Notes: generated by a model from the letters alone, not told the origin. DNA of 64,000 bases from Asterias rubens (GCF_902459465.1 NC_047071.1:5394001-5458000), one strand, 5' to 3'; shown: positions 39,558 to 64,000, numbered from the stretch's first letter. Numbers and translations are program-made.

Positions 39558-39572
39558 GGCTCCGTAAGAGCC
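39558..39572 (-). terminator. Aberrant histone 3' stem-loop of H2A
   Basis: GGCTCTTACGGAGCC (15 nt versus canonical 16-nt GGCTCTTTTCAGAGCC), followed by ACCA and a CAAAGAGAGA downstream element. Confidence 0.75.
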
Positions 39573-39603
39573 GTTTGGTTTATCAGTGTAGCAAGAGCTG
39601 AGT

Positions 39604-40200
<597 letters not shown>

Positions 40201-40340: not shown

Positions 40341-40959
40341 AAACAAAGCAAAAGCAAATATTTACAGAAACTGAAAAACATCATGTTTGTTTGTTTTTGC
40401 GTGCACATGTTTTTGTTGATTTTTCAAAATAAAACTATTACCAAATTCATAATTTCAAGTTAACTCTGGCGTATAGAGTCGCTGTTGTTGTTGTGTTGTA
40501 TGTTATTAAAGTAATACGGTGTCATGAACAAGGCACTTACTCAATGTACGTCTTTCTTTCTTTCTTCAAGTCCAATCTTGTGAACCCTCACTCGACTCGG
40601 TGACACATTTGAGCGTTGTCTTTTATAACTGACTGTAAAAGTAGAATAACAATCAACGAGAAAGATGTTTAGTGATCGCTAAAAATTATAGTGGACAAAG
40701 TTATCAAGATGATTTGAACTTCGTAAACAATGTTGTTGAGTTGTTCTACGGAGATATATAAAGAAGGCAGAAATATTTTGAATAACCCTTTAATATAATA
40801 TAGCATTATTGTAAACCCTGTTGATTTTAATTAATATTATTAAATGGGGAGGGTTGGTGTTACGGTGGCCACTTAATTCACGCATGTTTTGAATCTCTCT
40901 TTGGGAAATGTGTTGGCTCTGAAAAGAGCCGTTTGGATTGTGCTTGACGCCGGACCTGC

Positions 40960-41328
40960 TTATTTTGAAGTTGTGTACTTGGTGACCGCCTTGGTGCCCT
41001 CGCTGACAGCGTGTTTGGCCAGCTCACCGGGGAGAAGGAGACGGACTGCAGTCTGGACCTCTCGGCTGGAGATGGTTGATTTCTTGTTGTAGTGGGCCAA
41101 TCTAGAAGACTCGGCGGCAATGCGCTCGAAAATGTCGTTGACGAAGCTGTTCATAATCGACATGGCCTTGCTGGAAATGCCCGTGTCTGGATGAACCTGC
41201 TTCATGACCTTGTAGATGTAAATGCCGTAGCTCTCCTTGCGGCGACGACGTCTCTTCTTGTCTGTCCGGATTGGCCCCTTGGTGTTACCGGCTTTCTTCT
41301 GTCCCTTTCCACTTGCTTTGGGAGGCAT
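40960..41328 (-). CDS. H2B: Histone H2B, full-length ORF
   Basis: 122 aa; canonical stem-loop at 40915-40930 with CAAAGAGA element; promoter has GGATCC and TATAAA. The N-tail resembles sea-star gonadal H2B as recalled (not database-checked). Confidence 0.95.
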
Positions 41329-41903: not shown

Positions 41904-42185
41904 AACATAAAGTAGTTCGTCCCAGTAACAAAAGGACGTAAGCAACAAAATGGCTCCTGACATGAAAAATATGTAATTTTTGTTTGTTCTTTTGCTAGAA
42001 TTACCCTGAAGACATGTTTCCCCATTCCCCATGCAGAATTCATTCTAGAATGACTTTTGCATGGCAACAAATTTACCAAACTTTCCCGCTCATAATTCTT
42101 GAAACACAAATTTTAACATAAATTGCTTACGTCCTTCTGCCGGGAACTTTCCCTTACGTCCTTTTGCCGCGGAGCTCTGGAATCG

Positions 42186-42242
42186 CTTTCGTGGGGCTTT
42201 TCCCCCGGTGCTCTTGCGTGCTGTCTGCTTGGTACGAGCCAT
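42186..42242 (-). pseudogene. H3: Histone H3 N-terminal fragment (M + residues 1-18), fused to H3 residues 83-88
   Basis: ATG GCT CGT ACC AAG CAG...CCA CGA AAG = MARTKQTARKSTGGKAPRK, then CGATTCCAGAGCTCCGCGG (RFQSSA) at 42167-42185. Confidence 0.9.
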
Positions 42243-42269
42243 TATCTTCGCTTACTGTTTACGATGTTG

Positions 42270-42573
42270 TGGTGACACCGCTGAGCAACTTGTTCAACTC
42301 TTCATCGTTTCGGATAGCGAGCTGTAGATGACGGGGGTTGATTCTTGATTTCTTGTTGTCTCGAGCAGTATTACCAGTCAGTTCCAGTATTTCTGCCGTG
42401 AGGTACTCCATGACTGCCGCCAAGTAGACAGGGGCGCCAGCACCAACGCGCTGAGCGTAGTTGCCCTTCCTCAAGAAGCGGTGTACTCTACCAACGGGAA
42501 ATTGAAGTCCGGCCCTGGCGGATCGACTCTTTGCCTTGCTTCTGGCCTTACCGCTCTTTCCGCGTCCAGACAT
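42270..42573 (-). pseudogene. H2A: 3'-truncated H2A copy
   Basis: Matches the 39604 gene up to LLSGVT except LTGNTA versus LAGNAA, then joins the H3 5' flank; no stem-loop. Confidence 0.9.
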
Positions 42574-43459
42574 GACTGAATTGATATACTGAGCAAAGAG
42601 ACTGAAAGAACTGCTGGGTGCTTTGAATCTGTGTGAATGACTGCAGAGACTGCCAGTGGTGTACTTATGGCGTTAGGGTGGATCCCCAATGCACCAATCA
42701 GGTTTCTCCTCGCATGGACGCGCCCGGGTTCAGCGGAGCATTCTGGGCGGGGGTGGACCACCAGCGGCGGGCGGGGGCGGCACGCAGTTCGAGGGGAAGG
42801 TAGGGATAATTACTGCGGCGGTCCCCCCACCGTCAACACCCCTCTGAAAACAAGATAAGATTCCGAGAAAAAAAACCTAACCCCAACAACGACAACAACA
42901 ACAACAACAACAAAAACAAAGCAAAAGCAAATATTTACAGAAACTGAAAAACATCATGTTTGTTTGTTTGTTTTTGCGTGCACATGTTTTTGTTGATTTT
43001 TCAAAATAAAACTATTATCAAATTCATAATTTCAAGTTAACTCTGGCGTATAGAGTCGCTGTTGTTGTTGTGTTGTATGTTATTAAAGTAATACGGTGTC
43101 ATGAACAAGGCACTTACTCAATGTACGTCTTTCTTTCTTTCTTCAAGTCCAATCTTGTGAACCCTCACTCGACTCGGTGACACATTTGAGCGTTGTCTTT
43201 TATAACTGACTGTAAAAGTAGAATAACAATCAACGAGAAAGATGTTTAGTGATCGCTAAAAATTATAGTGGACAAAGTTATCAAGATGATTTGAACTTCG
43301 TAAACAATGTTGTTGAGTTGTTCTACGGAGATATATAAAGAAGGCAGAAATATTTTGAATAACCCTTTAATATAATATAGCATTATTGTAAACCCTGTTG
43401 ATTTTAATTAATATTATTAAATGGGGAGGGTTGGTGTTACGGTGGCCACTTAATTCACG

Positions 43460-43601
43460 GTACTTGGTGACCGCCTTGGTGCCCTCGCTGACAGCGTGTT
43501 TGGCCAGCTCACCGGGGAGAAGGAGACGGACTGCAGTCTGGACCTCTCGGCTGGAGATGGTTGATTTCTTGTTGTAGTGGGCCAATCTAGAAGACTCGGC
43601 G
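43460..43601 (-). pseudogene. H2B: Internal H2B fragment (AESSRL...AVTKY) behind an H2A promoter
   Basis: Matches 40975-41116; C-terminus and stem-loop deleted; joined to the H2A start by a short templated insertion. Confidence 0.85.
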
Positions 43602-44403
43602 ACTAGAAGACTAGAAGACATGACTGAATTGATATACTGAGCAAAGAGACTGAAAGAACTGCTGGGTGCTTTGAATCTGTGTGAATGACTGCAGAGACTG
43701 CCAGTGGTGTACTTATGGCGTTAGGGTGGATCCCCAATGCACCAATCAGGTTTCTCCTCGCATGGACGCGCCCGGGTTCAGCGGAGCATTCTGGGCGGGG
43801 GTGGACCACCAGCGGCGGGCGGGGGCGGCACGCAGTTCGAGGGGAAGGTAGGGATAATTACTGCGGCGGTCCCCCCACCGTCAACACCCCTCTGAAAACA
43901 AGATAAGATTCCGAGAAAAAAAACCTAACCCCAACAACGACAACAACAACAACAACAACAACAAAAACAAAGCAAAAGCAAATATTTACAGAAACTGAAA
44001 AACATCATGTTTGTTTGTTTTTGCGTGCACATGTTTTTGTTGATTTTTCAAAATAAAACTATTACCAAATTCATAATTTCAAGTTAACTCTGGCGTATAG
44101 AGTCGCTGTTGTTGTTGTGTTGTATGTTATTAAAGTAATACGGTGTCATGAACAAGGCACTTACTCAATGTACGCCTTTCTTTCTTTCTTCAAGTCCAAT
44201 CTTGTGAACCCTCACTCGACGACACATTTGAGCGTTGTTTTTTATAACTGACTGTAAAAGTAGAATAACAATCAACGAGAAAGATGTTTAGTGATCGCTA
44301 AAAATTATAGTGGACAAGTTATCAAGATGATTTGAACTTCGTAAACAATGTTGTTGAGTTGTTCTACGGAGATATATAAAGAAGGCAGAAATATTTTGAA
44401 TAA

Positions 44404-44697
<294 letters not shown>

Positions 44698-45566
44698 TGA
44701 TGACTGGTACACCGGAGAAGGCTTAGCTTTATACTGCGAGTCGGGGATCCGGCGGCCATTAGGGCATTGTTAGCATTCGCGCGCCTCGCTGTGAGCAGTG
44801 AAGCGGTCCACCAGAAAAGTTGCGTGTCTGCAAGGATGGGTGTCTGAATAATGGGCAGGCAACCATTGGAAAGGAGTTTTATACTCTGGTTAGAACTAAA
44901 ACACGAATATAGTGTAACCCAAAACAAGTATCCAAAAATAATAATGAGAGAAACTTATCAAAAAAAACAAAAACAAAATCTGCAATGGCCCGAGCATGCA
45001 TAGTACGTTAATTTTGAAGAAAACGATACCATTAAATTATGGAGTAAAACCAAAGCAAGAGATTGACCTAACCAACCCGACTAGACTGATAGAACGACCG
45101 ACCCAATAAAAGAATGGCGGTGCTGCGTAAAGATAAAAAACAACTGTTTTGTTACAGCTAGCAGGTTTTGGGGTATTGTTTTTTTCGTTCATGCTGTTTT
45201 GAATTTAACTTCTGACTGCCATCGTAGCGGGCGCTATACAACATTCGTATAAGTAGGCACGGTCCTCTATTATACCGAAAGTTATGTTTACACTGCAAGG
45301 TGTATACATTAGTTTGTCAAATTTCTAAGGTTCTTGTTTGTTTGTTGCTTGTTTGTTTATTTATTTATTTGTTTGTTTGTTTGTTTGTTTGTTTGTTTGT
45401 TTGTCTATTGGTTCGTTTATTGGTTTGTTTTTGTTTTGTTGAAGGATGGAGTGTGGAAGAGGAAAAATTGGAAGAAATAACGAATACACGGACGTGATTA
45501 ACATCTCTGTTAAGAAGTGGTGGCTCTGAAAAGAGCCGTTGTGTTTTGAGAAAGGAACGAATCCTC

Positions 45567-45641
45567 TCAGGCTCGTTCGCCACGAATTCGGCGGGCGAGT
45601 TGGATGTCCTTGGGCATGATGGTGACCCGCTTGGCGTGGAT
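45567..45641 (-). pseudogene. H3: Histone H3 C-terminal fragment (I112-A135, stop) with canonical stem-loop at 45522-45537
   Basis: IHAKRVTIMPKDIQLARRIRGERA*; joined through GATAC to the H1-array spacer. Confidence 0.9.
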
Positions 45642-46019
45642 ACATTCTTACTATTTCCGCCCTTCTGTGTACCCCCCGTGTCTCTACTGCCCCCCTTCAG
45701 AAAACAAACAAACAAACTAACAAACACCGCATTTTTATGTAAATTGGTACGTTTGTTTACATCAAATTCATCGTGTTTCGCCATTTTGTTTTGTTGCATA
45801 ATGCCCCCCTACACCACCGCTGCTTTTATGTAAACTTGTGGGTTTGTTTTTATTAGATCCATCGTTTTTCGCCATTTTGTTTCTGTTACTTAGTGTTTTT
45901 GATCAAACTAGTTACTTATTTATGTAATGTTTATGTATTTAATATTTTGGATGTATTTTTTTTATCGAAACAAATAAATTATCTGCCGATGTGATTATTT
46001 AATTTTTCAATTATTTTTC

Positions 46020-46706
46020 CTAGACAAATGCAGGTAATAGTCTCTTTTTGTAAGTTGTGGCTCTGAAAAGAGCCGTTTGGTTTGGTTGATTGTCCCGGGT
46101 GGGAACTGACTGCTTCTTTGGCTTGGTGGTCTTCTTCGGCTTTGCTGCTTTGGTGGCCTTCTTTGCCTTTGGCTTTGGACTCTTTGCGCCTTTGCTGGGC
46201 TTGGCGACTTTCTTTGATGGCTTGGCTGCTGTTTTCTTGGCTGCAACTTTCTTGGTGGGTGGATTCTTGACGATTTTCTTTGGAGTCTTCTGCTTGGTTA
46301 TCTTGGTTTTCTTGGCCTTCTCCTTCTTGGCTGCGGCTTTCTCTGCTTTCTTGGCTTTCATCTCTGCTTTCTTTGCTTGATCCTTCTCTTTCTTGGCCTT
46401 GGCTCGTTCTTTGACCTTCTCCGCCTGCTCCTTGGCCTTGTCCTTTGCTGGGTCCAATTTGAATGAACCGGAAGCTCCCTTGCCCTTGGTCTGGATAAGA
46501 ACTCCCTTCTGCACACCGGTATTGAGGGCTTTTCGGATGAAAACGGCCTGCCTGTCCATGTCGACTTGGAATGTGTCCTTGATGTACTTTCTGATGGCTT
46601 GACTGGACGAACCGTTTTTCTCCTTCAGTGCCACGATAGCGGCAACCACCATCTTGATTGCTGGAGGGTGGGCCCGAACGGTTGCAGACTTTTTCACGGT
46701 AGCCAT
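46020..46706 (-). pseudogene. H1: Histone H1 copy 1: stop-loss (TAG>CAG) and promoterless
   Basis: 228-aa ORF reads through the stem-loop at 46059-46074; only ~20 nt of upstream sequence retained. Confidence 0.8.
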
Positions 46707-47080
46707 GATGATAGAGAGAGATGATGTTTACATCAAATTCATCGTATTTCGCCATTTTGTTTTGTTGCATAATGCCCCCCTACATCACCGCTCCTTGTAT
46801 GTAAACTTGTGAGTTTGTTTTTATTAGATCCATCGTTTTTCGCCAGTTTGTTTCTGTTACATAGTGTTTTTGATCAAACTAGTTACTTATTTATGTAATG
46901 TTTATGTATTTAATATTTTGGATGTATTTTTTTTATCGAAACAAATAAATTATCTGCCGATGTGATTATTTACTTTTTCAATTATTTTTCCTAGACAAAT
47001 GCAGGTAATAGTCTCTTTTTGTAAGTTGTGGCTCTGAAAAGAGCCGTTTGGTTTGGTTGATTGTCCCGGGTGGGAACTGA

Positions 47081-47677
47081 CTACTTCTTTGGCTTGGTGG
47101 TCTTCTTCGGCTTTGCTGCTTTGGTGGCCTTCTTTGCCTTTGGCTTTGGACTCTTTGCGGCTTTGCTGGGCTTGGCGACTTTCTTTGATGGCTTGGCTGC
47201 TGTTTTCTTGGCTGCAACTTTCTTGGTGGGTGTCATCTTGACGATTTTCTTTGGAGTCTTCTTCTTGGTTTTCTTGGTTTTCTTGGCCTTCTCCTTCTTG
47301 GCTGCGGCTTTCTCTGCTTTCTTGGCTTTCATCTCTGCTTTCTTTGCTTGATCCTTCTCTTTCTTGGCCTTGGCTCGTTCTTTGACCTTCTCCGCCTGTT
47401 CCTTGGCCTTGTCCTTTGCTGGGTCCAATTTGAATGAACCGGAAGCTCCCTTGCCCTTGGTCTGGATAAGAACTCCCTTCTGCACACCGGTATTGAGGGC
47501 TTTTCGGATGAAAACGGCCTGCCTGTCCATGTCGACTTGGAATGTGTCCTTGATGTACTTTCTGATGGCTTGACTGGACGAACCGTTTTTCCCCTTCAGT
47601 GCCACGATAGCGGCAACCACCATCTTGATTGCTGGAGGGTGGGCCCGAACGGTTGCAGACTTTTTCACGGTAGCCAT
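47081..47677 (-). CDS. H1: Histone H1 copy 2
   Basis: 198 aa; winged-helix globular domain HPP...KGASGSFKL; Lys/Ala/Pro tail; canonical stem-loop; promoter present. Confidence 0.92.
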
Positions 47678-47890
47678 GATGATAGAGAGAGATGATGCAA
47701 GGGAATCGTTTCGTAAGAAGCTTTACAGCGAGCAATACTGATGAGACCCACCGGACCGTCAGCCTTTTTCAAGGGTCACGGGTGGCTCTGAGCAGCCCCT
47801 GGGTCCATTCACGCTGCTCAATCAACCGGCGAGGCTCGGCGGTTCGCGTGGAGCTGGAATTTACTCCAATATTAGTGTGTTTCATTTTTC
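47678..47890 (-). promoter_or_regulatory. H1 promoter (repeated in every long unit)
   Basis: AAACACA H1-box-like element at 47876-47882 and a GC-rich block; no canonical TATAA seen. Confidence 0.5.
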
Positions 47891-48739
47891 TTCTGATTTG
47901 CAAAATTCTTGTTTCAAATAGCATCGGACAATTTCCCCATAACTGTAGATGTGTTGGTCAAGTTCTAACCTTTCCATGCATACAATTTTCTTTTACGAGG
48001 TCTCATTATCTAAGCCTGAAACGACCACTATGAAATGACATTGTTTCCGATAGTGAAATTTTATTCATTTTTTTGTCGCATATAATGTTACATCGATTTA
48101 TGTAACATTATGATTATTGCTTCAAATAATGAGGATGATCTTAGCAAGTCAATTAATCCAATCACGCAATAGTTGTTGTAAAATTGTCTTGCGACAATTT
48201 CGAGAAACAAACTCGTTTTTGTTATTTGGGCATTATTGGTGCTTAAGGCAGTGGAGTCGCATGCAAGTTGATACATTCTTACTATTTCCGCCCTTCTGTG
48301 TACCCCCCGTGTCTCTACTGCCCCCCTTCAGAAAACAAACAAACAAACTAACAAACACCGCATATTTATGTAAATTGGTACGTTTGTTTACATCAAATTC
48401 ATCGTGTTTCGCCATTTTGTTTTGTTGCATAATGCCCCCCTACATCACCGCTGCTTTTATGTAAACTTATGGGTTTGTTTTTATTAGATCCATCGTTTTT
48501 CGCCATTTTGTTTCTGTTACATAGTGTTTTTGATCAAACTAGTTACTTATTTATGTAATATTTATGTATTTAATATTTTAGATGTATTTTTTTATCGAAA
48601 CAAATAAATTATCTGTCGATGTGATTATTTAATTTTTCAATTATTTTTCCTAGACAAATGCAGGTAATAGTCTCTTTTTGTAAAATGTGGCTCTGAAAAG
48701 AGCCGTTTGGTTTGGTTGATTGTCCCGGGTGGGAACTGA

Positions 48740-49336
48740 CTACTTCTTTGGCTTGGTGGTCTTCTTCGGCTTTGCTGCTTTGGTGGCCTTCTTTGCCTTT
48801 GGCTTTGGACTCTTTGCGGCTTTGCTGGGCTTGGCGACTTTCTTTGATGGCTTGGCTGCTGTTTTCTTGGCTGCAACTTTCTTGGTGGGTGTCTTCTTGA
48901 CGATTTTCTTTGGAGTCTTCTGCTTGGTTATCTTGGTTTTCTTGGCCTTCTCCTTCTTGGCTGCGGCTTTCTCTGCTTTCTTGGCTTTCATCTCTGCTTT
49001 CTTTGCTTGATCCTTCTCTTTCTTGGCCTTGGCTCGTTCTTTGACCTTCTCCGCCTGCTCCTTGGCCTTGTCCTTTGCTGGGTCCAATTTGAATGAACCG
49101 GAAGCTCCCTTGCCCTTGGTCTGGATAAGAACTCCCTTCTGCACACCGGTATTGAGGGCTTTTCGGATGAAAACGGCCTGCCTGTCCATGTCGACTTGGA
49201 ATGTGTCCTTGATGTACTTTCTGATGGCTTGACTGGACGAACCGTTTTTCTCCTTCAGTGCCACGATAGCGGCAACCACCATCTTGATTGCTGGAGGGTG
49301 GGCCCGAACGGTTGCAGACTTTTTCACGGTAGCCAT
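48740..49336 (-). CDS. H1: Histone H1 copy 3 (intact ORF, promoter deleted)
   Basis: 198 aa; upstream junction GATGATG|TTTACATC at ~49356, identical to copy 1. Confidence 0.8.
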
Positions 49337-49710
49337 GATGATAGAGAGAGATGATGTTTACATCAAATTCATCGTGTTTCGCCATTTTGTTTTGTTGCAT
49401 AATGCCCCCCTACATCACCGCTCCTTTTATGTAAACTTGTGAGTTTGTTTTTATTAGATCCATCGTTTTTCGCCATTTTGTTTCTGTTACATAGTGTTTT
49501 TGATCAAACTAGTTACTTATTTATGTAATGTTTATGTATTTAATATTTTGGATGTATTTTTTTTATCGAAACAAATAAATTATCTGCCGATGTGATTATT
49601 TAATTTTTCAATTATTTTTCCTAGACAAATGCAGGTAATAGTCTCTTTTTGTAAGTTGTGGCTCTGAAAAGAGCCGTTTGGTTTGGTTGATTGTCCCGGG
49701 TGGGAACTGA

Positions 49711-50307
49711 CTACTTCTTTGGCTTGGTGGTCTTCTTCGGCTTTGCTGCTTTGGTGGCCTTCTTTGCCTTTGGCTTTGGACTCTTTGCGGCTTTGCTGGG
49801 CTTGGCGACTTTCTTTGATGGCTTGGCTGCTGTTTTCTTGGCTGCAACTTTCTTGGTGGGTGTCATCTTGACGATTTTCTTTGGAGTCTTCTTCTTGGTT
49901 ATCTTGGTTTTCTTGGCCTTCTCCTTCTTGGCTGCGGCTTTCTCTGCTTTCTTGGCTTTCATCTCTGCTTTCTTTGCTTGATCCTTCTCTTTCTTGGCCT
50001 TGGCTCGTTCTTTGACCTTCTCCGCCTGTTCCTTGGCCTTGTCCTTTGCTGGGTCCAATTTGAATGAACCGGAAGCTCCCTTGCCCTTGGTCTGGATAAG
50101 AACTCCCTTCTGCACACCGGTATTGAGGGCTTTTCGGATGAAAACGGCCTGCCTGTCCATGTCGACTTGGAATGTGTCCTTGATGTACTTTCTGATGGCT
50201 TGACTGGACGAACCGTTTTTCTCCTTCAGTGCCACGATAGCGGCAACCACCATCTTGATTGCTGGAGGGTGGGCCCGAACGGTTGCAGACTTTTTCACGG
50301 TAGCCAT
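49711..50307 (-). CDS. H1: Histone H1 copy 4
   Basis: 198-aa ORF with stem-loop and promoter. Confidence 0.92.
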
Positions 50308-51369
50308 GATGATAGAGAGAGATGATGCAAGGGAATCGTTTCGTAAGAAGCTTTACAGCGAGCAATACTGATGAGACCCACCGGACCGTCAGCCTTTTTC
50401 AAGGGTCACGGGTGGCTCTGAGCAGCCCCTGGGTCCATTCACGCTGCTCAATCAACCGGCGAGGCTCGGCGGTTCGCGTGGAGCTGGAATTTACTCCAAT
50501 ATTAGTGTGTTTCATTTTTCTTCTGATTTGCAAAATTCTTGTTTAAAATAGCATCGGACAATTTCCCCATAACTGTAGATGTGTTGGTCAAGTTCTAACC
50601 TTTCCATGCATACAATTTTCTTTTACGAGGTCTCAATATCTAAGCCTGAAACGACCACTATGAAATGACATTGTTTCCGATAGTGAAATTTTATTCATTT
50701 TTTTGTCGCATATAATGTTACATCGATTTATGTAACATATGATTATTGCTTCAAATAATGATGATGATCTTAGCAAGTCAATTAATCCAATCACGCAATA
50801 GTTGTTGTAAAATTGTCTTGCGACAATTTCGAGAAACAAACTCGTTTTTGTTATTTGGGCATTATTGGTGCTTAAGGCAGTGGAGTCGCATGCAAGTTGA
50901 TACATTCTTACTATTTCCGCCCTTCTGTGTACCCCCCGTGTCTCTACTGCCCCCCTTCAGAAAACAAACAAACAAACTAACAAACACCGCATAGTTATGT
51001 AAATTGGTACGTTTGTTTACATCAAATTCATCGTGTTTCGCCATTTTGTTTTGTTGCATAATGCCCCCCTACATCACCGCTGCTTTTATGTAAACTTGTG
51101 AGTTTGTTTTTATTAGATCCATCGTTTTTCGCCATTTTGTTTCTGTTACATAGTGTTTTTGATCAAACTAGTTACTTATTTATGTAATGTTTATGTATTT
51201 AATATTTAGGATGTATTTTTTTTATCGAAACAAATAAATTATCTGCCGATGTGATTATTTAATTTTTCAATTATTTTTCCTAGACAAATGCAGGTAATAG
51301 TCTCTTTTTGTAAGTTGTGGCTCTGAAAAGAGCCGTTTGGTTTGGTTGATTGTCCCGGGTGGGAACTGA

Positions 51370-51966
51370 CTACTTCTTTGGCTTGGTGGTCTTCTTCGGC
51401 TTTGCTGCTTTGGTGGCCTTCTTTGCCTTTGGCTTTGGACTCTTTGCGGCTTTGCTGGGCTTGGCGACTTTCTTTGATGGCTTGGCTGCTGTTTTCTTGG
51501 CTGCAACTTTCTTGGTGGGTGTCTTCTTGACGATTTTCTTTGGAGTCTTCTTCTTGGTTATCTTGGTTTTCTTGGCCTTCTCCTTCTTGGCTGCGGCTTT
51601 CTCTGCTTTCTTGGCTTTCATCTCTGCTTTCTTTGCTTGATCCTTCTCTTTCTTGGCCTTGGCTCGTTCTTTGACCTTCTCCGCCTGTTCCTTGGCCTTG
51701 TCCTTTGCTGGGTCCAATTTGAATGAACCGGAAGCTCCCTTGCCCTTGGTCTGGATAAGAACTCCCTTCTGCACACCGGTATTGAGGGCTTTTCGGATGA
51801 AAACGGCCTGCCTGTCCATGTCGACTTGGAATGTGTCCTTGATGTACTTTCTGATGGCTTGACTGGACGAACCGTTTTTCTCCTTCAGTGCCACGATAGC
51901 GGCAACCACCATCTTGATTGCTGGAGGGTGGGCCCGAACGGTTGCAGACTTTTTCACGGTAGCCAT
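51370..51966 (-). CDS. H1: Histone H1 copy 5
   Basis: 198-aa ORF with stem-loop and promoter. Confidence 0.93.
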
Positions 51967-53030
51967 GATGATAGAGAGAGATGATGCGAGGGAATCGTTT
52001 CGTAAGAAGCTTTACAGCGAGCAATACTGATGAGACCCACCGGACCGTCAGCCTTTTTCAAGGGTCACGGGTGGCTCTGAGCAGCCCCTGGGTCCATTCA
52101 CGCTGCTCAATCAACCGGCGAGACTCGGCGGTTCGCGTGGAGCTGGAATTTACTCCAATATTAGTGTGTTTCATTTTTCTTCTGATTTGCAAAATTCTTG
52201 TTTAAAATAGCATCGGACAATTTCCCCATAACTGTAGATGTGTTGGTCAAGTTCTAACCTTTCCATGCATACAATTTTCTTTTACGAGGTCTCAATATCT
52301 AAGCCTGAAACGACCACTATGAAATGACATTGTTTCCGATAGTGAAATTTTATTCATTTTTTTGTCGCATATAATGTTACATCGATTTATGTAACATATG
52401 ATTATTGCTTCAAATAATGATGATGATCTTAGCAAGTCAATTAATCCAATCACGCAATAGTTGTTGTAAAATTGTCTTGCGACAATTTCGAGAAACAAAC
52501 TCGTTTTTGTTATTTGGGCATTATTGGTGCTTAAGGCAGTGGAGTCGCATGCAAGTTGATACATTCTTACTATTTCCGCCCTTCTGTGTACCCCCCCCGT
52601 GTCTCTACTGCCCCCCTTCAGAAAACAAACAAACAAACTAACAAACACCGCATAGTTATGTAAATTGGTACGTTTGTTTACATCAAATTCATCGTGTTTC
52701 GCCATTTTGTTTTGTTGCATAATGCCCCCCTACATCACCGCTGCTTTTATGTAAACTTGTGAGTTTGTTTTTATTAGATCCATCGTTTTTCGCCATTTTG
52801 TTTCTGTTACATAGTGTTTTTGATCAAACTAGTTACTTATTTATGTAATGTTTATGTATTTAATATTTAGGATGTATTTTTTTTATCGAAACAAATAAAT
52901 TATCTGCCGATGTGATTATTTAATTTTTCAATTATTTTTCCTAGACAAATGCAGGTAATAGTCTCTTTTTGTAAGTTGTGGCTCTGAAAAGAGCCGTTTG
53001 GTTTGGTTGATTGTCCCGGGTGGGAACTGA

Positions 53031-53627
53031 CTACTTCTTTGGCTTGGTGGTCTTCTTCGGCTTTGCTGCTTTGGTGGCCTTCTTTGCCTTTGGCTTTGGA
53101 CTCTTTGCGGCTTTGCTGGGCTTGGCGACTTTCTTTGATGGCTTGGCTGCTGTTTTCTTGGCTGCAACTTTCTTGGTGGGTGTCTTCTTGACGATTTTCT
53201 TTGGAGTCTTCTTCTTGGTTATCTTGGTTTTCTTGGCCTTCTCCTTCTTGGCTGCGGCTTTCTCTGCTTTCTTGGCTTTCATCTCTGCTTTCTTTGCTTG
53301 ATCCTTCTCTTTCTTGGCCTTGGCTCGTTCTTTGACCTTCTCCGCCTGTTCCTTGGCCTTGTCCTTTGCTGGGTCCAATTTGAATGAACCGGAAGCTCCC
53401 TTGCCCTTGGTCTGGATAAGAACTCCCTTCTGCACACCGGTATTGAGGGCTTTTCGGATGAAAACGGCCTGCCTGTCCATGTCGACTTGGAATGTGTCCT
53501 TGATGTACTTTCTGATGGCTTGACTGGACGAACCGTTTTTCTCCTTCAGTGCCACGATAGCGGCAACCACCATCTTGATTGCTGGAGGGTGGGCCCGAAC
53601 GGTTGCAGACTTTTTCACGGTAGCCAT
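53031..53627 (-). CDS. H1: Histone H1 copy 6
   Basis: 198-aa ORF with stem-loop and promoter. Confidence 0.93.
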
Positions 53628-54219
53628 GATGATAGAGAGAGATGATGCAAGGGAATCGTTTCGTAAGAAGCTTTACAGCGAGCAATACTGATGAGACCCA
53701 ACGGACCGTCAGCCTTTTTCAAGGGTCACGGGTGGCTCTGAGCAGCCCCTGGGTCCATTCACGCTGCTCAATCAACCGGCGAGACTCGGCGGTTCGCGTG
53801 GAGCTGGAATTTACTCCAATATTAGTGTGTTTCATTTTTCTTCTGATTTGCAAAATTCTTGTTTAAAATAGCATCGGACAATTTCCCCATAACTGTAGAT
53901 GTGTTGGTCAAGTTCTAACCTTTCCATGCATACAATTTTCTTTAACGAGGTCTCAATATCTAAGACTGAAACGACCACTATGAAATGACATTGTTTCCGA
54001 TAGTGAAATTTTATTCATTTTTTTGTCGCATATAATGTTACATCGATTTATGTAACATATGATTATTGCTTCAAATAATGATGATGATCTTAGCAAGTCA
54101 ATTAATCCAATCACGCAATAGTTGTTGTAAAATTGTCTTGCGACAATTTCGAGAAACAAACTCGTTTTTGTTATTTGGGCATTATTGGTGCTTAGGGCAG
54201 AAGTATGCAAGTTGATACA

Positions 54220-54345
54220 TTTCTTTGGCTTGGTGGTCTTCTTCGGCTTTGCTGCTTTGGTGGCCTTTTTTGCCTTTGGCTTTGGACTCTTTGCGGCTTT
54301 GCTGGGCTTGGCGACTTTCTTTGATGGCTTTTTCACGGTAGCCAT
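54220..54345 (-). pseudogene. H1: Histone H1 copy 7: in-frame deletion of residues 7-162; stop and stem-loop lost
   Basis: MATVKK|PSKKVAK...KPKK, then reads into spacer sequence; the promoter is intact. Confidence 0.9.
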
Positions 54346-55406
54346 GATGATAGAGAGAGATGATGCGAGGGAATCGTTTCGTAAGAAGCTTTACAGCGAG
54401 CAATACTGATGAGACCCACCGGACCGTCAGCCTTTTTCAAGGGTCACGGGTGGCTCTGAGCAGCCCCTGGGTCCATTCACGCTGCTCAATCAACCGGCGA
54501 GACTCGGCGGTTCGCGTGGAGCTGGAATTTACTCCAATATTAGTGTGTTTCATTTTTCTTCTGATTTGCAAAATTCTTGTTTAAAATAGCATCGGACAAT
54601 TTCCCCATAACTGTAGATGTGTTGGTCAAGTTCTAACCTTTCCATGCATACAATTTTCTTTTACGAGGTCTCAATATCTAAGCCTGAAACGACCACTATG
54701 AAATGACATTGTTTCCGATAGTGAAATTTTATTCATTTTTTTGTCGCATATAATGTTACATCGATTTATGTAACATATGATTATTGCTTCAAATAATGAT
54801 GATGATCTTGGCAAGTCAATTAATCCAATCACGCAATAGTTGTTGTAAAATTGTCTTGCGACTATTTCGAGAAACAAACTCGTTTTTGTTATTTGGGCAT
54901 TATTGGTGCTTAAGGCAGTGGAGTCGCATGCAAGTTGATACATTCTTACTATTTCCGCCCTTCTGTGTACCCCCCGTGTCTCTACTGCCCCCCTTCAGAA
55001 AACAAACAAACAAACTAACAAACACCGCATAGTTATGTAAATTGGTACGTTTGTTTACATCAAATTCATCGTGTTTCGCCATTTTGTTTTGTTGCATAAT
55101 GCCCCCCTACATCACCGCTGCTTTTATGTAAACTTGTGAGTTTGTTTTTATTAGATCCATCGTTTTTCGCCATTTTGTTTCTGTAACATAGTGTTTTTGA
55201 TCAAACTAGTTACTTATTTATGTAATGTTTATGTATTTGATATTAAGGATGTATTTTTTTTATCGAAACAAATAAATTATCTGCCGATGTGATTATTTAA
55301 TTTTTCAATTATTTTTCCTAGACAAATGCAGGTAATAGTCTCTTTTTGTAAGTTGTGGCTCTGAAAAGAGCCGTTTGGTTTGGTTGATTGTCCCTGTGGG
55401 AACTGA

Positions 55407-56003
55407 CTACTTCTTTGGCTTGGTGGTCTTCTTCGGCTTTGCTGCTTTGGTGGCCTTCTTTGCCTTTGGCTTTGGACTCTTTGCGGCTTTGCTGGGCTTG
55501 GCGACTTTCTTTGATGGCTTGGCTGCTGTTTTCTTGGCTGCAACTTTCTTGGTGGGTGTCTTCTTGACGATTTTCTTTGGAGTCTTCTTCTTGGTTATCT
55601 TGGTTTTCTTGGCCTTCTCCTTCTTGGCTGCGGCTTTCTCTGCTTTCTTGGCTTTCATCTCTGCTTTCTTTGCTTGATCCTTCTCTTTCTTGGCCTTGGC
55701 TCGTTCTTTGACCTTCTCCGCCTGTTCCTTGGCCTTGTCCTTTGCTGGGTCCAATTTGAATGAACCGGAAGCTCCCTTGCCCTTGGTCTGGATAAGAACT
55801 CCCTTCTGCACACCGGTATTGAGGGCTTTTCGGATGAAAACGGCCTGCCTGTCCATGTCGACTTGGAATGTGTCCTTGATGTACTTTCTGATGGCTTGAC
55901 TGGACGAACCGTTTTTCTCCTTCAGTGCCACGATAGCGGCAACCACCATCTTGATTGCTGGAGGGTGGGCCCGAACGGTTGCAGACTTTTTCACGGTAGC
56001 CAT
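55407..56003 (-). CDS. H1: Histone H1 copy 8
   Basis: 198-aa ORF with stem-loop and promoter. Confidence 0.93.
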
Positions 56004-57064
56004 GATGATAGAGAGAGATGATGCAAGGGAATCGTTTCGTAAGAAGCTTTACAGCGAGCAATACTGATGAGACCCACCGGACCGTCAGCCTTTTTCAAGG
56101 GTCACGGGTGGCTCTGAGCAGCCCCTGGGTCCATTCACGCTGCTCAATCAACCGGCGAGACTCGGCGGTTCGCGTGGAGCTGGAATTTACTCCAATATTA
56201 GTGTGTTTCATTTTTCTTCTGATTTGCAAAATTCTTGTTTAAAATAGCATCGGACAATTTCCCCATAACTGTAGATGTGTTGGTCAAGTTCTAACCTTTC
56301 CATGCATACAATTTTCTTTAACGAGGTCTCAATATCTAAGCCTGAAACGACCACTATGAAATGACATTGTTTCCGATAGTGAAATTTTATTCATTTTTTT
56401 GTCGCATATAATGTTACATCGATTTATGTAACATATGATTATTGCTTCAAATAATGATGATGATCTTAGCAAGTCAATTAATCCAATCACGCAATAGTTG
56501 TTGTAAAATTGTCTTGCGACAATTTCGAGAAACAAACTCGTTTTTGTTATTTGGGCATTATTGGTGCTTAAGGCAGTGGAGTCGCATGCAAGTTGATACA
56601 TTCTTACTATTTCCGCCCTTCTGTGTACCCCCCGTGTCTCTACTGCCCCCCTTCAGAAAACAAACAAACAAACTAACAAACACCGCATAGTTATGTAAAT
56701 TGGTACGTTTGTTTACATCAAATTCATCGTGTTTCGCCATTTTGTTTTGTTGCATAATGCCCCCCTACATCACCGCTGCTTTTATGTAAACTTGTGAGTT
56801 TGTTTTTATTAGATCCATCGTTTTTCGCCATTTTGTTTCTGTAACATAGTGTTTTTGATCAAACTAGTTACTTATTTATGTAATGTTTATGTATTTAATA
56901 TTTGGATGTATTTTTTTTAACGAAACAAATAAATTATCTGCCGATGTGATTATTTAATTTTTCAATTATTTTTCCTAGACAAATGCAGGTAATAGTCTCT
57001 TTTTGTAAGTTGTGGCTCTGAAAAGAGCCGTTTGGTTTGGTTGATTGTCCCGGGTGGGAACTGA

Positions 57065-57661
57065 CTACTTCTTTGGCTTGGTGGTCTTCTTCGGCTTTGC
57101 TGCTTTGGTGGCCTTCTTTGCCTTTGGCTTTGGACTCTTTGCGGCTTTGCTGGGCTTGGCGACTTTCTTTGATGGCTTGGCTGCTGTTTTCTTGGCTGCA
57201 ACTTTCTTGGTGGGTGTCTTCTTGACGATTTTCTTTGGAGTCTTCTTCTTGGTTATCTTGGTTTTCTTGGCCTTCTCCTTCTTGGCTGCGGCTTTCTCTG
57301 CTTTCTTGGCTTTCATCTCTGCTTTCTTTGCTTGATCCTTCTCTTTCTTGGCCTTGGCTCGTTCTTTGACCTTCTCCGCCTGTTCCTTGGCCTTGTCCTT
57401 TGCTGGGTCCAATTTGAATGAACCGGAAGCTCCCTTGCCCTTGGTCTGGATAAGAACTCCCTTCTGCACACCGGTATTGAGGGCTTTTCGGATGAAAACG
57501 GCCTGCCTGTCCATGTCGACTTGGAATGTGTCCTTGATGTACTTTCTGATGGCTTGACTGGACGAACCGTTTTTCTCCTTCAGTGCCACGATAGCGGCAA
57601 CCACCATCTTGATTGCTGGAGGGTGGGCCCGAACGGTTGCAGACTTTTTCACGGTAGCCAT
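57065..57661 (-). CDS. H1: Histone H1 copy 9
   Basis: 198-aa ORF with stem-loop and promoter. Confidence 0.93.
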
Positions 57662-58697
57662 GATGATAGAGAGAGATGATGCAAGGGAATCGTTTCGTAA
57701 GAAGCTTTACAGCGAGCAATACTGATGAGACCCACCGGACCGTCAGCCTTTTTCAAGGGTCACGGGTGGCTCTGAGCAGCCCCTGGGTCCATTCACGCTG
57801 CTCAATCAACCGGCGAGACTCGGTGGTTCGCGTGGAGCTGGAATTTACTCCAATATTAGTGTGTTTCATTTTTCTTCTGATTTGCAAAATTCTTGTTTAA
57901 AATAGCATCGGACAATTTCCCCATAACTGTAGATGTGTTGGTCAAGTTCTAACCTTTCCATGCATACAATTTTCTTTACCGACCACTATGAAATGACATT
58001 GTTTCCGATAGTGAAATTTTATTCATTTTTTTGTCGCATATAATGTTACATCGATTTATGTAACATATGATTATTGCTTCAAATAATGATGATGATCTTA
58101 GCAAGTCAATTAATCCAATCACGCAATAGTTGTTGTAAAATTGTCTTGCGACAATTTCGAGAAACAAACTCGTTTTTGTTATTTGGGCATTATTGGTGCT
58201 TAAGGCAGTGGAGTCGCATGCAAGTTGATACATTCTTACTATTTCCGCCCTTCTGTGTACCCCCCGTGTCTCTACTGCCCCCCTTCAGAAAACAAACAAA
58301 CAAACTAACAAACACCGCATAGTTATGTAAATTGGTACGTTTGTTTACATCAAATTCATCGTGTTTCGCCATTTTGTTTTGTTGCATAATGCCCCCCTAC
58401 ATCACCGCTGCTTTTATGTAAACTTGTGAGTTTGTTTTTATTAGATCCATCGTTTTTCGCCATTTTGTTTCTGTTACATAGTGTTTTTGATCAAACTAGT
58501 TACTTATTTATGTAATGTTTATGTATTTAATATTTTGGATGTATTTTTTTTATCGAAACAAATAAATTATCTGCCGATGTGATTATTTAATTTTTCAATT
58601 ATTTTTCCTAGACAAATGCAGGTAATAGTCTCTTTTTGTAAGTTGTGGCTCTGAAAAGAGCCGTTTGGTTTGGTTGATTGTCCCGGGTGGGAACTGA

Positions 58698-59294
58698 CTA
58701 CTTCTTTGGCTTGGTGGTCTTCTTCGGCTTTGCTGCTTTGGTGGCCTTCTTTGCCTTTGGCTTTGGACTCTTTGCGGCTTTGCTGGGCTTGGCGACTTTC
58801 TTTGATGGCTTGGCTGCTGTTTTCTTGGCTGCAACTTTCTTGGTGGGTGTCTTCTTGACGATTTTCTTTGGAGTCTTCTTCTTGGTTATCTTGGTTTTCT
58901 TGGCCTTCTCCTTCTTGGCTGCGGCTTTCTCTGCTTTCTTGGCTTTCATCTCTGCTTTCTTTGCTTGATCCTTCTCTTTCTTGGCCTTGGCTCGTTCTTT
59001 GACCTTCTCCGCCTGTTCCTTGGCCTTGTCCTTTGCTGGGTCCAATTTGAATGAACCGGAAGCTCCCTTGCCCTTGGTCTGGATAAGAACTCCCTTCTGC
59101 ACACCGGTATTGAGGGCTTTTCGGATGAAAACGGCCTGCCTGTCCATGTCGACTTGGAATGTGTCCTTGATGTACTTTCTGATGGCTTGACTGGACGAAC
59201 CGTTTTTCTCCTTCAGTGCCACGATAGCGGCAACCACCATCTTGATTGCTGGAGGGTGGGCCCGAACGGTTGCAGACTTTTTCACGGTAGCCAT
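58698..59294 (-). CDS. H1: Histone H1 copy 10
   Basis: 198-aa ORF with stem-loop and promoter. Confidence 0.93.
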
Positions 59295-60355
59295 GATGAT
59301 AGAGAGAGATGATGCAAGGGAATCGTTTCGTAAGAAGCTTTACAGCGAGCAATACTGATGAGACCCACCGGACCGTCAGCCTTTTTCAAGGGTCACGGGT
59401 GGCTCTGAGCAGCCCCTGGGTCCATTCACGCTGCTCAATCAACCGGCGAGACTCGGCGGTTCGCGTGGAGCTGGAATTTACTCCAATATTAGTGTGTTTC
59501 ATTTTTCTTCTGATTTGCAAAATTCTTGTTTAAAATAGCATCGGACAATTTCCCCATAACTGTAGATGTGTTGGTCAAGTTCTAACCTTTCCATGCATAC
59601 AATTTTCTTTAACGAGGTCTCAATATCTAAGCCTGAAACGACCACTATGAAATGACATTGTTTCCGATAGTGAAATTTTATTCATTTTTTTGTCGCATAT
59701 AATGTTACATCGATTTATGTAACATATGATTATTGCTTCAAATAATGATGATGATCTTAGCAAGTCAATTAATCCAATCACGCAATAGTTGTTGTAAAAT
59801 TGTCTTGCGACAATTTCGAGAAACAAACTCGTTTTTGTTATTTGGGCATTATTGGTGCTTAAGGCAGTGGAGTCGCATGCAAGTTGATACATTCTTACTA
59901 TTTCCGCCCTTCTGTGTACCCCCCGTGTCTCTACTGCCCCCCTTCAGAAAACAAACAAACAAACTAACAAACACCGCATATTTATGTAAATTGGTACGTT
60001 TGTTTACATCAAATTCATCGTGTTTCGCCATTTTGTTTTGTTGCATAATGCCCCCCTACATCACCGCTGCTTTTATGTAAACTTGTGGTTTGTTTTTATT
60101 AGATCCATCGTTTTTCGCCATTTTGTTTCTGTTACATAGTGTTTTTGATCAAACTAGTTACTTATTTATGTAATGTTTATGTATTTAATATTTTGGATGT
60201 ATTTTTTTTATCGAAACAAATAAATTATCTGCCGATGTGATTATTTAATTTTTCAATTATTTTTCCTAGACAAATGCAGGTAATAGTCTCTTTTTGTAAG
60301 TTGTGGCTCTGAAAAGAGCCGTTTGGTTTGGTTGATTGTCCCGGGTGGGAACTGA

Positions 60356-60952
60356 CTACTTCTTTGGCTTGGTGGTCTTCTTCGGCTTTGCTGCTTTGGT
60401 GGCCTTCTTTGCCTTTGGCTTTGGACTCTTTGCGGCTTTGCTGGGCTTGGCGACTTTCTTTGATGGCTTGGCTGCTGTTTTCTTGGCTGCAACTTTCTTG
60501 GTGGGTGTCTTCTTGACGATTTTCTTTGGAGTCTTCTTCTTGGTTATCTTGGTTTTCTTGGCCTTCTCCTTCTTGGCTGCGGCTTTCTCTGCTTTCTTGG
60601 CTTTCATCTCTGCTTTCTTTGCTTGATCCTTCTCTTTCTTGGCCTTGGCTCGTTCTTTGACCTTCTCCGCCTGTTCCTTGGCCTTGTCCTTTGCTGGGTC
60701 CAATTTGAATGAACCGGAAGCTCCCTTGCCCTTGGTCTGGATAAGAACTCCCTTCTGCACACCGGTATTGAGGGCTTTTCGGATGAAAACGGCCTGCCTG
60801 TCCATGTCGACTTGGAATGTGTCCTTGATGTACTTTCTGATGGCTTGACTGGACGAACCGTTTTTCTCCTTCAGTGCCACGATAGCGGCAACCACCATCT
60901 TGATTGCTGGAGGGTGGGCCCGAACGGTTGCAGACTTTTTCACGGTAGCCAT
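60356..60952 (-). CDS. H1: Histone H1 copy 11
   Basis: 198-aa ORF with stem-loop and promoter. Confidence 0.93.
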
Positions 60953-62016
60953 GATGATAGAGAGAGATGATGCGAGGGAATCGTTTCGTAAGAAGCTTTA
61001 CAGCGAGCAATACTGATGAGACCCACCGGACCGTCAGCCTTTTTCAAGGGTCACGGGTGGCTCTGAGCAGCCCCTGGGTCCATTCACGCTGCTCAATCAA
61101 CCGGCGAGACTCGGCGGTTCGCGTGGAGCTGGAATTTACTCCAATATTAGTGTGTTTCATTTTTCTTCTGATTTGCAAAATTCTTGTTTAAAATAGCATC
61201 GGACAATTTCCCCATAACTGTAGATGTGTTGGTCAAGTTCTAACCTTTCCATGCATACAATTTTCTTTAACGAGGTCTCAATATCTAAGCCTGAAACGAC
61301 CACTATGAAATGACATTGTTTCCGATAGTGAAATTTTATTCATTTTTTTGTCGCATATAATGTTACATCGATTTATGTAACATATGATTATTGCTTTAAA
61401 TAATGATGATGATCTTAGCAAGTCAATTAATCCAATCACGCAATAGTTGTTGTAAAATTGTCTTGCGACAATTTCGAGAAACAAACTCGTTTTTGTTATT
61501 TGGGCATTATTGGTGCTTAAGGCAGTGGAGTCGCATGCAAGTTGATACATTCTTACTATTTCCGCCCTTCTGTGTACCCCCCCCGTGTCTCTACTGCCCC
61601 CCTTCAGAAAACAAACAAACAAACTAACAAACACCGCATAGTTATGTAAATTGGTACGTTTGTTTACATCAAATTCATCGTGTTTCGCCATTTTGTTTTG
61701 TTGCATAATGCCCCCCTACATCACCGCTGCTTTTATGTAAACTTGTGAGTTTGTTTTTATTAGATCCATCGTTTTTCGCCATTTTGTTTCTGTTACATAG
61801 TGTTTTTGATCAAACTAGTTACTTATTTATGTAATGTTTATGTATTTAATATTTTGGATGTATTTTTTTTATCGAAACAAATAAATTATCTGCCGATGTG
61901 ATTATTTAATTTTTCAATTATTTTTCCTAGACAAATGCAGGTAATAGTCTCTTTTTGTAAGTTGTGGCTCTGAAAAGAGCCGTTTGGTTTGGTTGATTGT
62001 CCCGGGTGGGAACTGA

Positions 62017-62613
62017 CTACTTCTTTGGCTTGGTGGTCTTCTTCGGCTTTGCTGCTTTGGTGGCCTTCTTTGCCTTTGGCTTTGGACTCTTTGCGGCTTT
62101 GCTGGGCTTGGCGACTTTCTTTGATGGCTTGGCTGCTGTTTTCTTGGCTGCAACTTTCTTGGTGGGTGTCTTCTTGACGATTTTCTTTGGAGTCTTCTTC
62201 TTGGTTATCTTGGTTTTCTTGGCCTTCTCCTTCTTGGCTGCGGCTTTCTCTGCTTTCTTGGCTTTCATCTCTGCTTTCTTTGCTTGATCCTTCTCTTTCT
62301 TGGCCTTGGCTCGTTCTTTGACCTTCTCCGCCTGTTCCTTGGCCTTGTCCTTTGCTGGGTCCAATTTGAATGAACCGGAAGCTCCCTTGCCCTTGGTCTG
62401 GATAAGAACTCCCTTCTGCACACCGGTATTGAGGGCTTTTCGGATGAAAACGGCCTGCCTGTCCATGTCGACTTGGAATGTGTCCTTGATGTACTTTCTG
62501 ATGGCTTGACTGGACGAACCGTTTTTCTCCTTCAGTGCCACGATAGCGGCAACCACCATCTTGATTGCTGGAGGGTGGGCCCGAACGGTTGCAGACTTTT
62601 TCACGGTAGCCAT
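62017..62613 (-). CDS. H1: Histone H1 copy 12
   Basis: 198-aa ORF with stem-loop and promoter. Confidence 0.93.
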
Positions 62614-63676
62614 GATGATAGAGAGAGATGATGCGAGGGAATCGTTTCGTAAGAAGCTTTACAGCGAGCAATACTGATGAGACCCACCGGACCGTCAGCC
62701 TTTTTCAAGGGTCACGGGTGGCTCTGAGCAGCCCCTGGGTCCATTCACGCTGCTCAATCAACCGGCGAGACTCGGCGGTTCGCGTGGAGCTGGAATTTAC
62801 TCCAATATTAGTGTGTTTCATTTTTCTTCTGATTTGCAAAATTCTTGTTTAAAATAGCATCGGACAATTTCCCCATAACTGTAGATGTGTTGGTCAAGTT
62901 CTAACCTTTCCATGCATACAATTTTCTTTAACGAGGTCTCAATATCTAAGCCTGAAACGACCACTATGAAATGACATTGTTTCCGATAGTGAAATTTTAT
63001 TCATTTTTTTGTCGCATATAATGTTACATCGATTTATGTAACATATGATTATTGCTTCAAATAATGATGATGATCTTAGCAAGTCAATTAATCCAATCAC
63101 GCAATAGTTGTTGTAAAATTGTCTTGCGACAATTTCGAGAAACAAACTCGTTTTTGTTATTTGGGCATTATTGGTGCTTAAGGCAGTGGAGTCGCATGCA
63201 AGTTGATACATTCTTACTATTTCCGCCCTTCTGTGTACCCCCCCGTGTCTCTACTGCCCCCCTTCAGAAAACAAACAAACAAACTAACAAACACCGCATA
63301 TTTATGTAAATTGGTACGTTTGTTTACATCAAATTCATCGTGTTTCGCCATTTTGTTTTGTTGCATAATGCCCCCCTACATCACCGCTGCTTTTATGTAA
63401 ACTTGTGGGTTTGTTTTTATTAGATCCATCGTTTTTCGCCATTTTGTTTCTGTTACATAGTGTTTTTGATCAAACTAGTTACTTATTTATGTAATGTTTA
63501 TGTATTTAATATTTTGGATGTATTTTTTTTATCGAAACAAATAAATTATCTGCCGATGTGATTATTTAATTTTTCAATTATTTTTCCTAGACAAATGCAG
63601 GTAATAGTCTCTTTTTGTAAGTTGTGGCTCTGAAAAGAGCCGTTTGGTTTGGTTGATTGTCCCGGGTGGGAACTGA

Positions 63677-64000
63677 CTACTTCTTTGGCTTGGTGGTCTT
63701 CTTCGGCTTTGCTGCTTTGGTGGCCTTCTTTGCCTTTGGCTTTGGACTCTTTGCGGCTTTGCTGGGCTTGGCGACTTTCTTTGATGGCTTGGCTGCTGTT
63801 TTCTTGGCTGCAACTTTCTTGGTGGGTGTCTTCTTGACGATTTTCTTTGGAGTCTTCTTCTTGGTTATCTTGGTTTTCTTGGCCTTCTCCTTCTTGGCTG
63901 CGGCTTTCTCTGCTTTCTTGGCTTTCATCTCTGCTTTCTTTGCTTGATCCTTCTCTTTCTTGGCCTTGGCTCGTTCTTTGACCTTCTCCGCCTGTTCCTT
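63677..64000 (-). CDS. H1: Histone H1 copy 13 (partial, cut by the window edge)
   Basis: C-terminal half identical to the other copies; stem-loop present. Confidence 0.9.
   Translation of the reverse strand, partial: KEQAEKVKERAKAKKEKDQAKKAEMKAKKAEKAAAKKEKAKKTKITKKKTPKKIVKKTPTKKVAAKKTAAKPSKKVAKPSKAAKSPKPKAKKATKAAKPKKTTKPKK

Follow-up and report, generated by a model that had tools for sequence, protein, structure and literature searches.

A homogenized H1-only tandem array joined at both edges to core-histone repeats in the starfish Asterias rubens

We analyzed a 64,000-nucleotide stretch of the genome of the starfish Asterias rubens (LR699101.1:5394001-5458000, assembly GCA_902459465.3; hereafter, the window) and found that its minus strand carries, from 45636 to 64000, a tandem array composed exclusively of linker-histone (H1) genes. 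Core-histone repeat sequence adjoins both edges of this array. From the sequence of the genes, their regulatory signals and their surroundings, we consider it likely that the array represents the replication-dependent H1 family of A. rubens, which would be maintained as its own homogenized tandem sub-array within the core-histone locus.

Results

Extent and composition of the array

The array was delimited by BLAST searches with one coding sequence and one whole unit. Within the window it contains 11 complete H1 coding sequences of 597 nt that share 98.99-100% identity, along with one copy cut at position 64000 and one that is internally deleted, giving 13 H1-derived copies. In this part of the array, no core histone was found between H1 units, either as an open reading frame (ORF) or as a BLAST match. 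Eight of the units are full length (1633-1661 bp), and the rest are short, composite or partial. An earlier reading of the window made without database searches (the sequence-only reading) had described at least 13 head-to-tail H1 copies in ~1.66-kb units, most of them encoding an identical 198-aa protein. The copy number agrees with our count, and the shared protein is encoded by 7 of the 11 complete in-window copies. The unit length, however, describes the eight full units and not the two 971-bp forms, the 2376-bp composite or the partial end units. Tandem Repeats Finder, run with a period limit of 500, did not detect the array.

The array continues past the end of the window to window-equivalent position 75097, in an extended locus (L003) that adds seven full coding sequences and a further copy truncated at its 5' end. 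In total, the 29.5 kb of assembled array hold 18 full coding sequences and two truncated copies. At 75097, two bases past an ATG, the array runs into a 500-N gap (LR699101.1:5469098-5469597), and the sequence beyond it is unrelated; because the array ends in this gap, the assembled H1 copy number is a lower bound.

The H1 protein and its gene signals

The 198-aa product matches the Pfam Linker_histone family (PF00538; E=9.8e-28, residues 13-84) and is rich in lysine (61 of 198 residues; isoelectric point [pI] 10.7). Its C-terminal tail comprises 113 residues, including 49 lysines, 24 alanines and 9 prolines, and its N-terminal tail comprises 12. Echinoid sperm H1 proteins carry an extended N-terminal tail with repeated SPKK-type motifs; the N-terminal tail of the starfish protein contains no S/T-P-K-K motif and no SPKK-type extension. 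The only S/T-P-x-K sites (the cyclin-dependent kinase [CDK] type) in the protein are TPKK at 141 and TPTK at 149. The 597-nt ORF is uninterrupted, and therefore intronless, in all full units. ORFs of 261-263 aa that overlap each H1 gene in another frame were rejected as genes and attributed to lysine-codon-rich sequence.

Downstream of the coding sequences, the Rfam model RF00032 scores above its gathering cutoff 12 times in the array, once per H1 3' end (35.5-36.7 bits versus a cutoff of 34). The exact stem GGCTCTTTTCAGAGCC and the element CAAAAAGAGA also occur 12 times each in the in-window array, in agreement with the stem-loop and downstream element that the sequence-only reading had placed after each H1. 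The stem begins 35 nt past the stop codon, and in all copies CAAAAAGAGA follows 8 nt past the stem. A representative signal at 60280-60325 (minus strand; Rfam and exact motifs) has its stem at 60305-60320 and CAAAAAGAGA at 60287-60296; the other eleven RF00032 matches, also on the minus strand, lie at 46034, 47005, 48664, 49635, 51294, 52955, 55332, 56989, 58622, 61941 and 63601. Sea-urchin histone 3' ends carry a stem-loop and a CAAGAAAGA-like downstream element, and the starfish 3' ends, with CAAAAAGAGA as candidate downstream element, are of this type.

In gene orientation, the order of a unit is stop codon, 35-nt 3' untranslated region, 16-nt stem-loop, ACAACTTA, CAAAAAGAGA, spacer, promoter module and ORF. 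The spacer is AT-rich, about 0.8 kb long, and includes two diverged direct repeats of ~67 bp. The promoter module, for which exact motif matches at 61141-61158 (minus strand) provide a representative, consists of GAAACACAC followed by an inverted CCAAT (ATTGG). Within GAAACACAC is the heptamer AAACACA, at -205 to -199 from the ATG, which we take to be the H1-gene-specific box; the module as a whole spans -205 to about -190. The window has 10 copies of the module, and no full unit lacks it; the stretch between the module and the ORF is G+C-rich and has no canonical TATAAA. An ordinary replication-dependent H1 fits these genes, because they encode no SPKK extension, have two CDK-type sites and carry a standard stem-loop and downstream element.

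The genes might instead encode a specialized H1 subtype amplified to meet a burst of demand in early cleavage or spermatogenesis and silent in somatic cycles, in the manner of the early genes in the sea-urchin division between early and late histones. We consider this unlikely. In its favor, sea urchins use high-copy, homogeneous tandem arrays for early embryonic histones, as stated in a 2026 review (PMC13525598). Moreover, the exact 198-aa protein is present in 103 blocks of a public metagenome collection, and the occurrence of the unit in so many seawater metagenomes fits a multi-copy element together with abundant gametes or larvae. The protein, however, is a plain H1 whose 12-residue N-terminal tail lacks the sperm-type extension and whose tail is strongly basic rather than acid-rich, as in the oocyte type. 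In addition, protein searches turned up no other intact canonical A. rubens H1 that could supply somatic cells; the only other close copies they returned are two decayed orphans on the same chromosome.

The first orphan (L001:11363-12926; LR699101.1 at about 3.20 Mb) is a 1.5-kb segment that crosses the boundary between two successive units; its spacer is 94% identical, and it has kept its stem-loop. The second (L002:9805-11595; about 0.92 Mb) is frameshifted and annotated as 'H1.1, embryonic-like'; the annotated model protein contains alternative-frame peptides, and no stem-loop reaches the Rfam threshold at the locus. Among more distant sequences, a relative that is 71-75% identical (P0005) has, according to its gene list, H1 repeated at 4.36 kb on a 20-kb contig. 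A protein search seeded with this relative returned no named asteroid H1s, and a scan of metagenome loci with the H1 protein yielded just the unit already described and some distant H1s, without another asteroid array. Single H1 genes from a brittle star and a sea urchin were not arrayed at the loci looked up, which do not amount to a survey.

Annotated gene models and transcript 3' ends

Twelve annotated 210-aa H1 models depart from the intronless structure. They require one GC-AG intron of 472 nt, whose excision takes away the final 57 nucleotides of coding sequence together with the stop codon, stem-loop and downstream element (donor CCAAAG/GCAAAG, acceptor TTTTCTGAAG/GGGGGC, with slashes at the intron boundaries; L003:10001-11105). 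All full units have these splice sites (near 60413 for the donor and near 59941 for the acceptor in the case of the gene at 60356-60952), and an AATAAA lies about 180 nt past the stop codon of the 210-aa model. This intron is not needed to encode H1. Either the annotation pipeline encountered poly(A)+ read-through transcripts, or the models are an artifact. Annotated models of the array genes are chimeric more generally, at 185-462 aa; publicly available H1 models at this locus are unreliable, and the reference assembly is broken here. In presumed RNA runs of one organism, we detected 22-30% of the unit's sampled words, versus the ~44% expected for mRNA; DNA runs hold about 90% of them.

If the 210-aa models were taken at face value, the genes could have two modes of 3'-end formation: stem-loop cleavage, and a spliced, polyadenylated read-through transcript, perhaps usable outside S phase (for instance as stored maternal mRNA), whose 210-aa H1 product would end in 29 new residues. 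Combined with the nested H1 sub-array, this would make a compound locus in which H1 dosage and mRNA type are both set apart from the core genes. As an account of the sequence we find this doubtful.

Homogenization and reality of the array

An alignment of 14 full units gave a mean pairwise identity of 99.65%. Inner units show 2-6 differences each, and unit B at the 3' edge (47081) shows 19. Among 12 inner units, variable columns are concentrated in the spacer (15 of 1063, versus 1 of 597 in the coding sequence; Fisher p=0.015), and the same variants recur in non-adjacent units in a mosaic pattern. This is the signature that would be expected of unequal exchange and gene conversion combined with purifying selection, with decay where homogenization fails.

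Other assemblies contain the same arrangement. Short-read metagenome contigs from other samples extend past a single unit and are colinear with a unit dimer at 98.9-99.7%, and in 5 of 8 metagenome contigs the head-tail overlap equals the assembler's k (141, 123 or 55), with a period of 1659. A further 2.3 units are found on L015, an independent contig of 7.4 kb. Because independent assemblies reproduce the head-to-tail period, we accept the tandem arrangement as real; it is not itself an assembly artifact.

The sequence-only reading had allowed that the array might be collapsed or expanded by assembly, and the concern is partly justified, given that the array stops at the 500-N gap. Five of the 20 assembled copies are also visibly damaged, through deletions in units A and C and in the copy at 70319, an internal deletion in a mini-H1 and, again in unit A, loss of the stop codon. 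Along with the chimeric gene models, these observations could be taken to mean that the array is largely an over-expanded or mis-joined assembly product, or mostly a dead relic that supplies little H1. We regard this as very unlikely. The units carry individual single-nucleotide polymorphisms, indels and deletions in a mosaic, as real distinct copies would, and the head-to-tail period recurs in at least six independent assemblies. Furthermore, variation is much lower in the coding sequence than in the spacer, and the promoter, ORF and 3' signals are kept in every full unit.

Core-histone sequence at both array borders

At the downstream border, H1 spacer is cleanly fused at 45636/45637-45641 to a 3' fragment of an H3 gene (45497-45641, minus strand) that retains about the last 23-24 codons, the stop codon and its own stem-loop. 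The upstream border is found in L015, where H3, H2B and 605 bp are followed by two H1 coding fragments and then full units. Intact H2B (122 aa; 40960-41328, minus strand) and H2A genes (125 aa; 39604-39981, minus strand; ORF and Pfam) sit 4-6 kb from the array edge. The H2B gene has an exact stem-loop at 40915-40930, and the same protein is encoded in canonical core repeats; the chromosome assembly has genes for this exact protein nowhere but at the two flanks of the array. A second partial core repeat, consisting of H3 from about codon 74, H2B and H2A, lies ~11-14 kb beyond the gap.

The canonical A. rubens core repeat was obtained from contigs that are 98-99% identical to the region and that appear, by name, to be long-read assemblies. 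It spans 5385 bp on one strand in the order H2A-U2 small nuclear RNA (snRNA)-H4-H3-H2B and contains no H1. Interleaving of the quintet type is thus not found, with a core repeat that lacks H1 and H1 units that lack core genes, and with no H1 in the core repeat, the H1 supply would come from the sub-array. An origin of the H1 unit from a core repeat trimmed by deletion was considered and rejected, because the two share only their stem-loop regions and one short simple stretch. Most of the core array is probably missing from the assembly, and the region probably constitutes the main histone locus of A. rubens.

These borders bear on several claims of the sequence-only reading. Its statement that core histones are absent is correct inside the array and fails for the window, where core genes and fragments fill 39.6-45.6 kb. 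The picture of a separate H1 locus does not survive the joining of core-repeat sequence to both array edges. Because of this physical linkage, the uncoupling of H1 dosage from the core histones that the sequence-only reading suggested can apply at most, and in principle, to copy number, and not to location. An independent, Mytilus-type H1 locus unlinked to core genes, in keeping with the absence of any core gene within the 29.5 kb of assembled array, therefore has next to no probability: core-repeat sequence is fused to both borders, in direct contradiction within the window itself, intact H2B and H2A lie close to the array edge, and the exact H2B protein appears in the chromosome assembly only beside the array.

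Individual H1 units

All units lie on the minus strand. The array begins at its 3' edge with a terminal partial unit (45636-46109), 474 bp of 3' spacer past the last H1 with a stem-loop at 46034-46079, that corresponds by BLAST to unit positions 1186-1661 at 98.3%. It is followed by short unit A (46110-47080; 971 bp; H1 coding sequence 46110-46706), in which the stop codon is lost through a TAG to CAG change and a 228-aa ORF extends to 46020. Unit B (47081-48739) is full length and is the most diverged full unit, with 19 differences from the consensus and three amino-acid changes in its H1 (47081-47677). Short unit C (48740-49710; 971 bp; H1 48740-49336) has no promoter. It carries the same 688-bp spacer deletion as unit A, with the promoter included in the deletion, and a motif scan found no H1-box/CCAAT module upstream of either coding sequence, because only ~20 bp of native 5' flank remains.

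Beyond these edge units, full unit D (49711-51369) encodes an H1 with one amino-acid change (49711-50307), and full unit E (51370-53030) encodes the consensus 198-aa protein (51370-51966). Composite unit F (53031-55406; 2376 bp) contains an intact H1 (53031-53627) and a mini-H1 ORF (53953-54345), each with its own promoter module. The mini-H1 has lost coding nucleotides 115-579, and with them the globular domain, as well as the stop codon; it has no stem-loop, and Pfam identifies no domain in it. Five full units, G-K, follow at 55407-57064, 57065-58697, 58698-60355, 60356-62016 and 62017-63676. All encode the identical 198-aa H1, and that at 57065-58697 carries a 28-bp spacer deletion. The window ends within the H1 of unit L (63677-64000), whose full coding sequence is contained in L003.

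Rearranged core repeats, U2 genes and mobile elements

Between the array and the intact H2B gene, 42090-45496 is occupied by rearranged partial duplicates of the core repeat of mixed orientation. They include an N-terminal piece of H3 (42090-42242, minus strand), a truncated H2A (42259-42573, minus strand), a C-terminal piece of H2B (43367-43621, minus strand) and an inverted middle piece of H3 (from 44416, plus strand). About 3.2 kb of this region consists of overlapping duplicates in which H2B-H2A segments occur three times and H3 is in pieces, one of them inverted.

In every canonical core repeat, H2A and H4 are separated by a full U2 snRNA gene (RF00004, 175 bits) of the same orientation (L009:1740-1933 and 7125-7318; L012:111-304), and for this reason we describe the core unit as a histone quartet plus U2. 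In the window, a core-repeat tail downstream of H2A (38670-39603, minus strand) ends ~29-30 nt into the U2 gene, leaving a cut remnant at 38670. At this point the last core repeat has its U2 gene interrupted by an inserted Tx1-type long interspersed nuclear element (LINE; 31338-38670, minus strand). Its ORFs comprise a zf-CCHC-containing ORF1 (37509-38606) and endonuclease/reverse transcriptase segments (35785-37512 and 31338-32504). Two independent contigs (L007:~6630-11292 and L012:~5500-8792) carry the LINE at the same point in U2, one of the two elements being diverged. These insertions fit a putative U2-site-specific LINE that resides in the histone/U2 repeat. In L012, intact H3 and H4 genes, and not the rearranged duplicates, adjoin the LINE-bearing repeat; this contig comes from short reads and may follow a high-copy path. 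U2 within a sea-star core repeat is not mentioned in the available part of the review cited above (PMC13525598).

Two further features were noted in the surrounding sequence. A piggyBac-type transposase (PF13843; L005:2925-9082, window-equivalent ~89.5-95.7 kb) lies directly upstream of the second partial core repeat, and a tRNA gene (Rfam, 48 bits) is located at 22120-22192 (minus strand), within the left part of the window, which is rich in repeats.

Discussion

Our preferred interpretation, a replication-dependent H1 family held as a sub-array of the core-histone locus, implies a specific mode of operation and maintenance. Each 1.66-kb unit would constitute a self-contained gene, with an H1-box/CCAAT promoter ~200 bp upstream of an intronless 198-codon ORF and its own 3' signals. 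The stem-loop and purine-rich downstream element are predicted to yield an SLBP- and U7-dependent, non-polyadenylated mRNA coupled to S phase. Unequal exchange and gene conversion would hold the inner units at about 99.7-99.9% identity, and purifying selection would hold the coding part almost invariant; 3'-edge units and a few internal ones may escape this homogenization and accumulate promoter deletions, stop loss and amino-acid changes. As a consequence of this organization, H1 copy number could drift independently of the core genes while remaining in the same locus.

The H1 and core sub-arrays presumably share one histone locus body. Replication-coupled H1 and core genes have stem-loop processing and the histone locus body in common, and CRAMP1/Cramped is an H1-specific regulator that is conserved in bilaterians (PMC12979687). 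Through this regulator, transcriptional independence of H1 may be available inside the histone locus body.

Four points weigh against this interpretation. The gap cuts the array, so that the reference assembly shows neither its full extent nor its upstream border. The status of these genes as the H1 family of the species is inferred from two protein searches, and more distant paralogues may exist. The share of the unit's words found in RNA runs could reflect carry-over of DNA. Finally, if the GC-AG intron is real, a share of the transcripts is not classically processed.

Separation of H1 from core histone genes has precedent. In Mytilus, M. edulis included, H1 genes form tandem clusters of their own, and the accompanying core clusters lack H1 (Drabent 1999; Albig 2003; Eirin-Lopez 2002, summarised in PMC4106214); the sequence-only reading had likewise pointed to mussels. 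Fluorescence in situ hybridization in mussels places H1 and core clusters on different chromosome pairs (PMC4106214). The starfish array resembles the Mytilus clusters in its head-to-tail units with one H1 and no core gene, and in the core repeats without H1 that accompany it, but it belongs to a different phylum and is fused at both borders to the core repeat on one chromosome. Turtles and trypanosomes are also listed among such cases in the 2026 review (PMC13525598). The kind of organization is therefore already known from mussels; the twist in the starfish is the contiguity of the two sub-arrays, whose mussel counterparts lie on different chromosomes.

Closer relatives provide further comparisons. 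Core histone clusters of sea stars were described by Cool et al. (1988, as cited in PMC13525598), in the same animal class and with genes on one strand; the A. rubens repeat likewise has four core genes and no H1. That work concerned core clusters, whereas the H1 arrangement comes from the A. rubens array reported here, and the literature we searched yielded no description of H1 gene organization in a sea star. The early quintet of sea urchins, given as H2A-H3-H2B-H4-H1 in the same review (PMC13525598), is likewise an echinoderm tandem array with same-strand polarity. In urchins, however, H1 alternates with the core genes in each unit, which fixes a 1:1 ratio, whereas the starfish sorts them into separate sub-arrays. 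Loci of the Drosophila virilis group mix quartet and quintet units, again as given in that review (PMC13525598), and so resemble the starfish locus in that one locus holds different numbers of H1 and core genes. There, however, H1 is missing from some units, and no H1-only units are described.

The A. rubens locus would thus represent a third echinoderm arrangement, beside the urchin quintet, in which an H1 array under concerted evolution is joined to a core/U2 repeat. As such, it may offer a natural system for studying how unequal exchange within one locus sets the ratio of H1 to core genes, and how H1-specific control operates inside a shared histone locus body.

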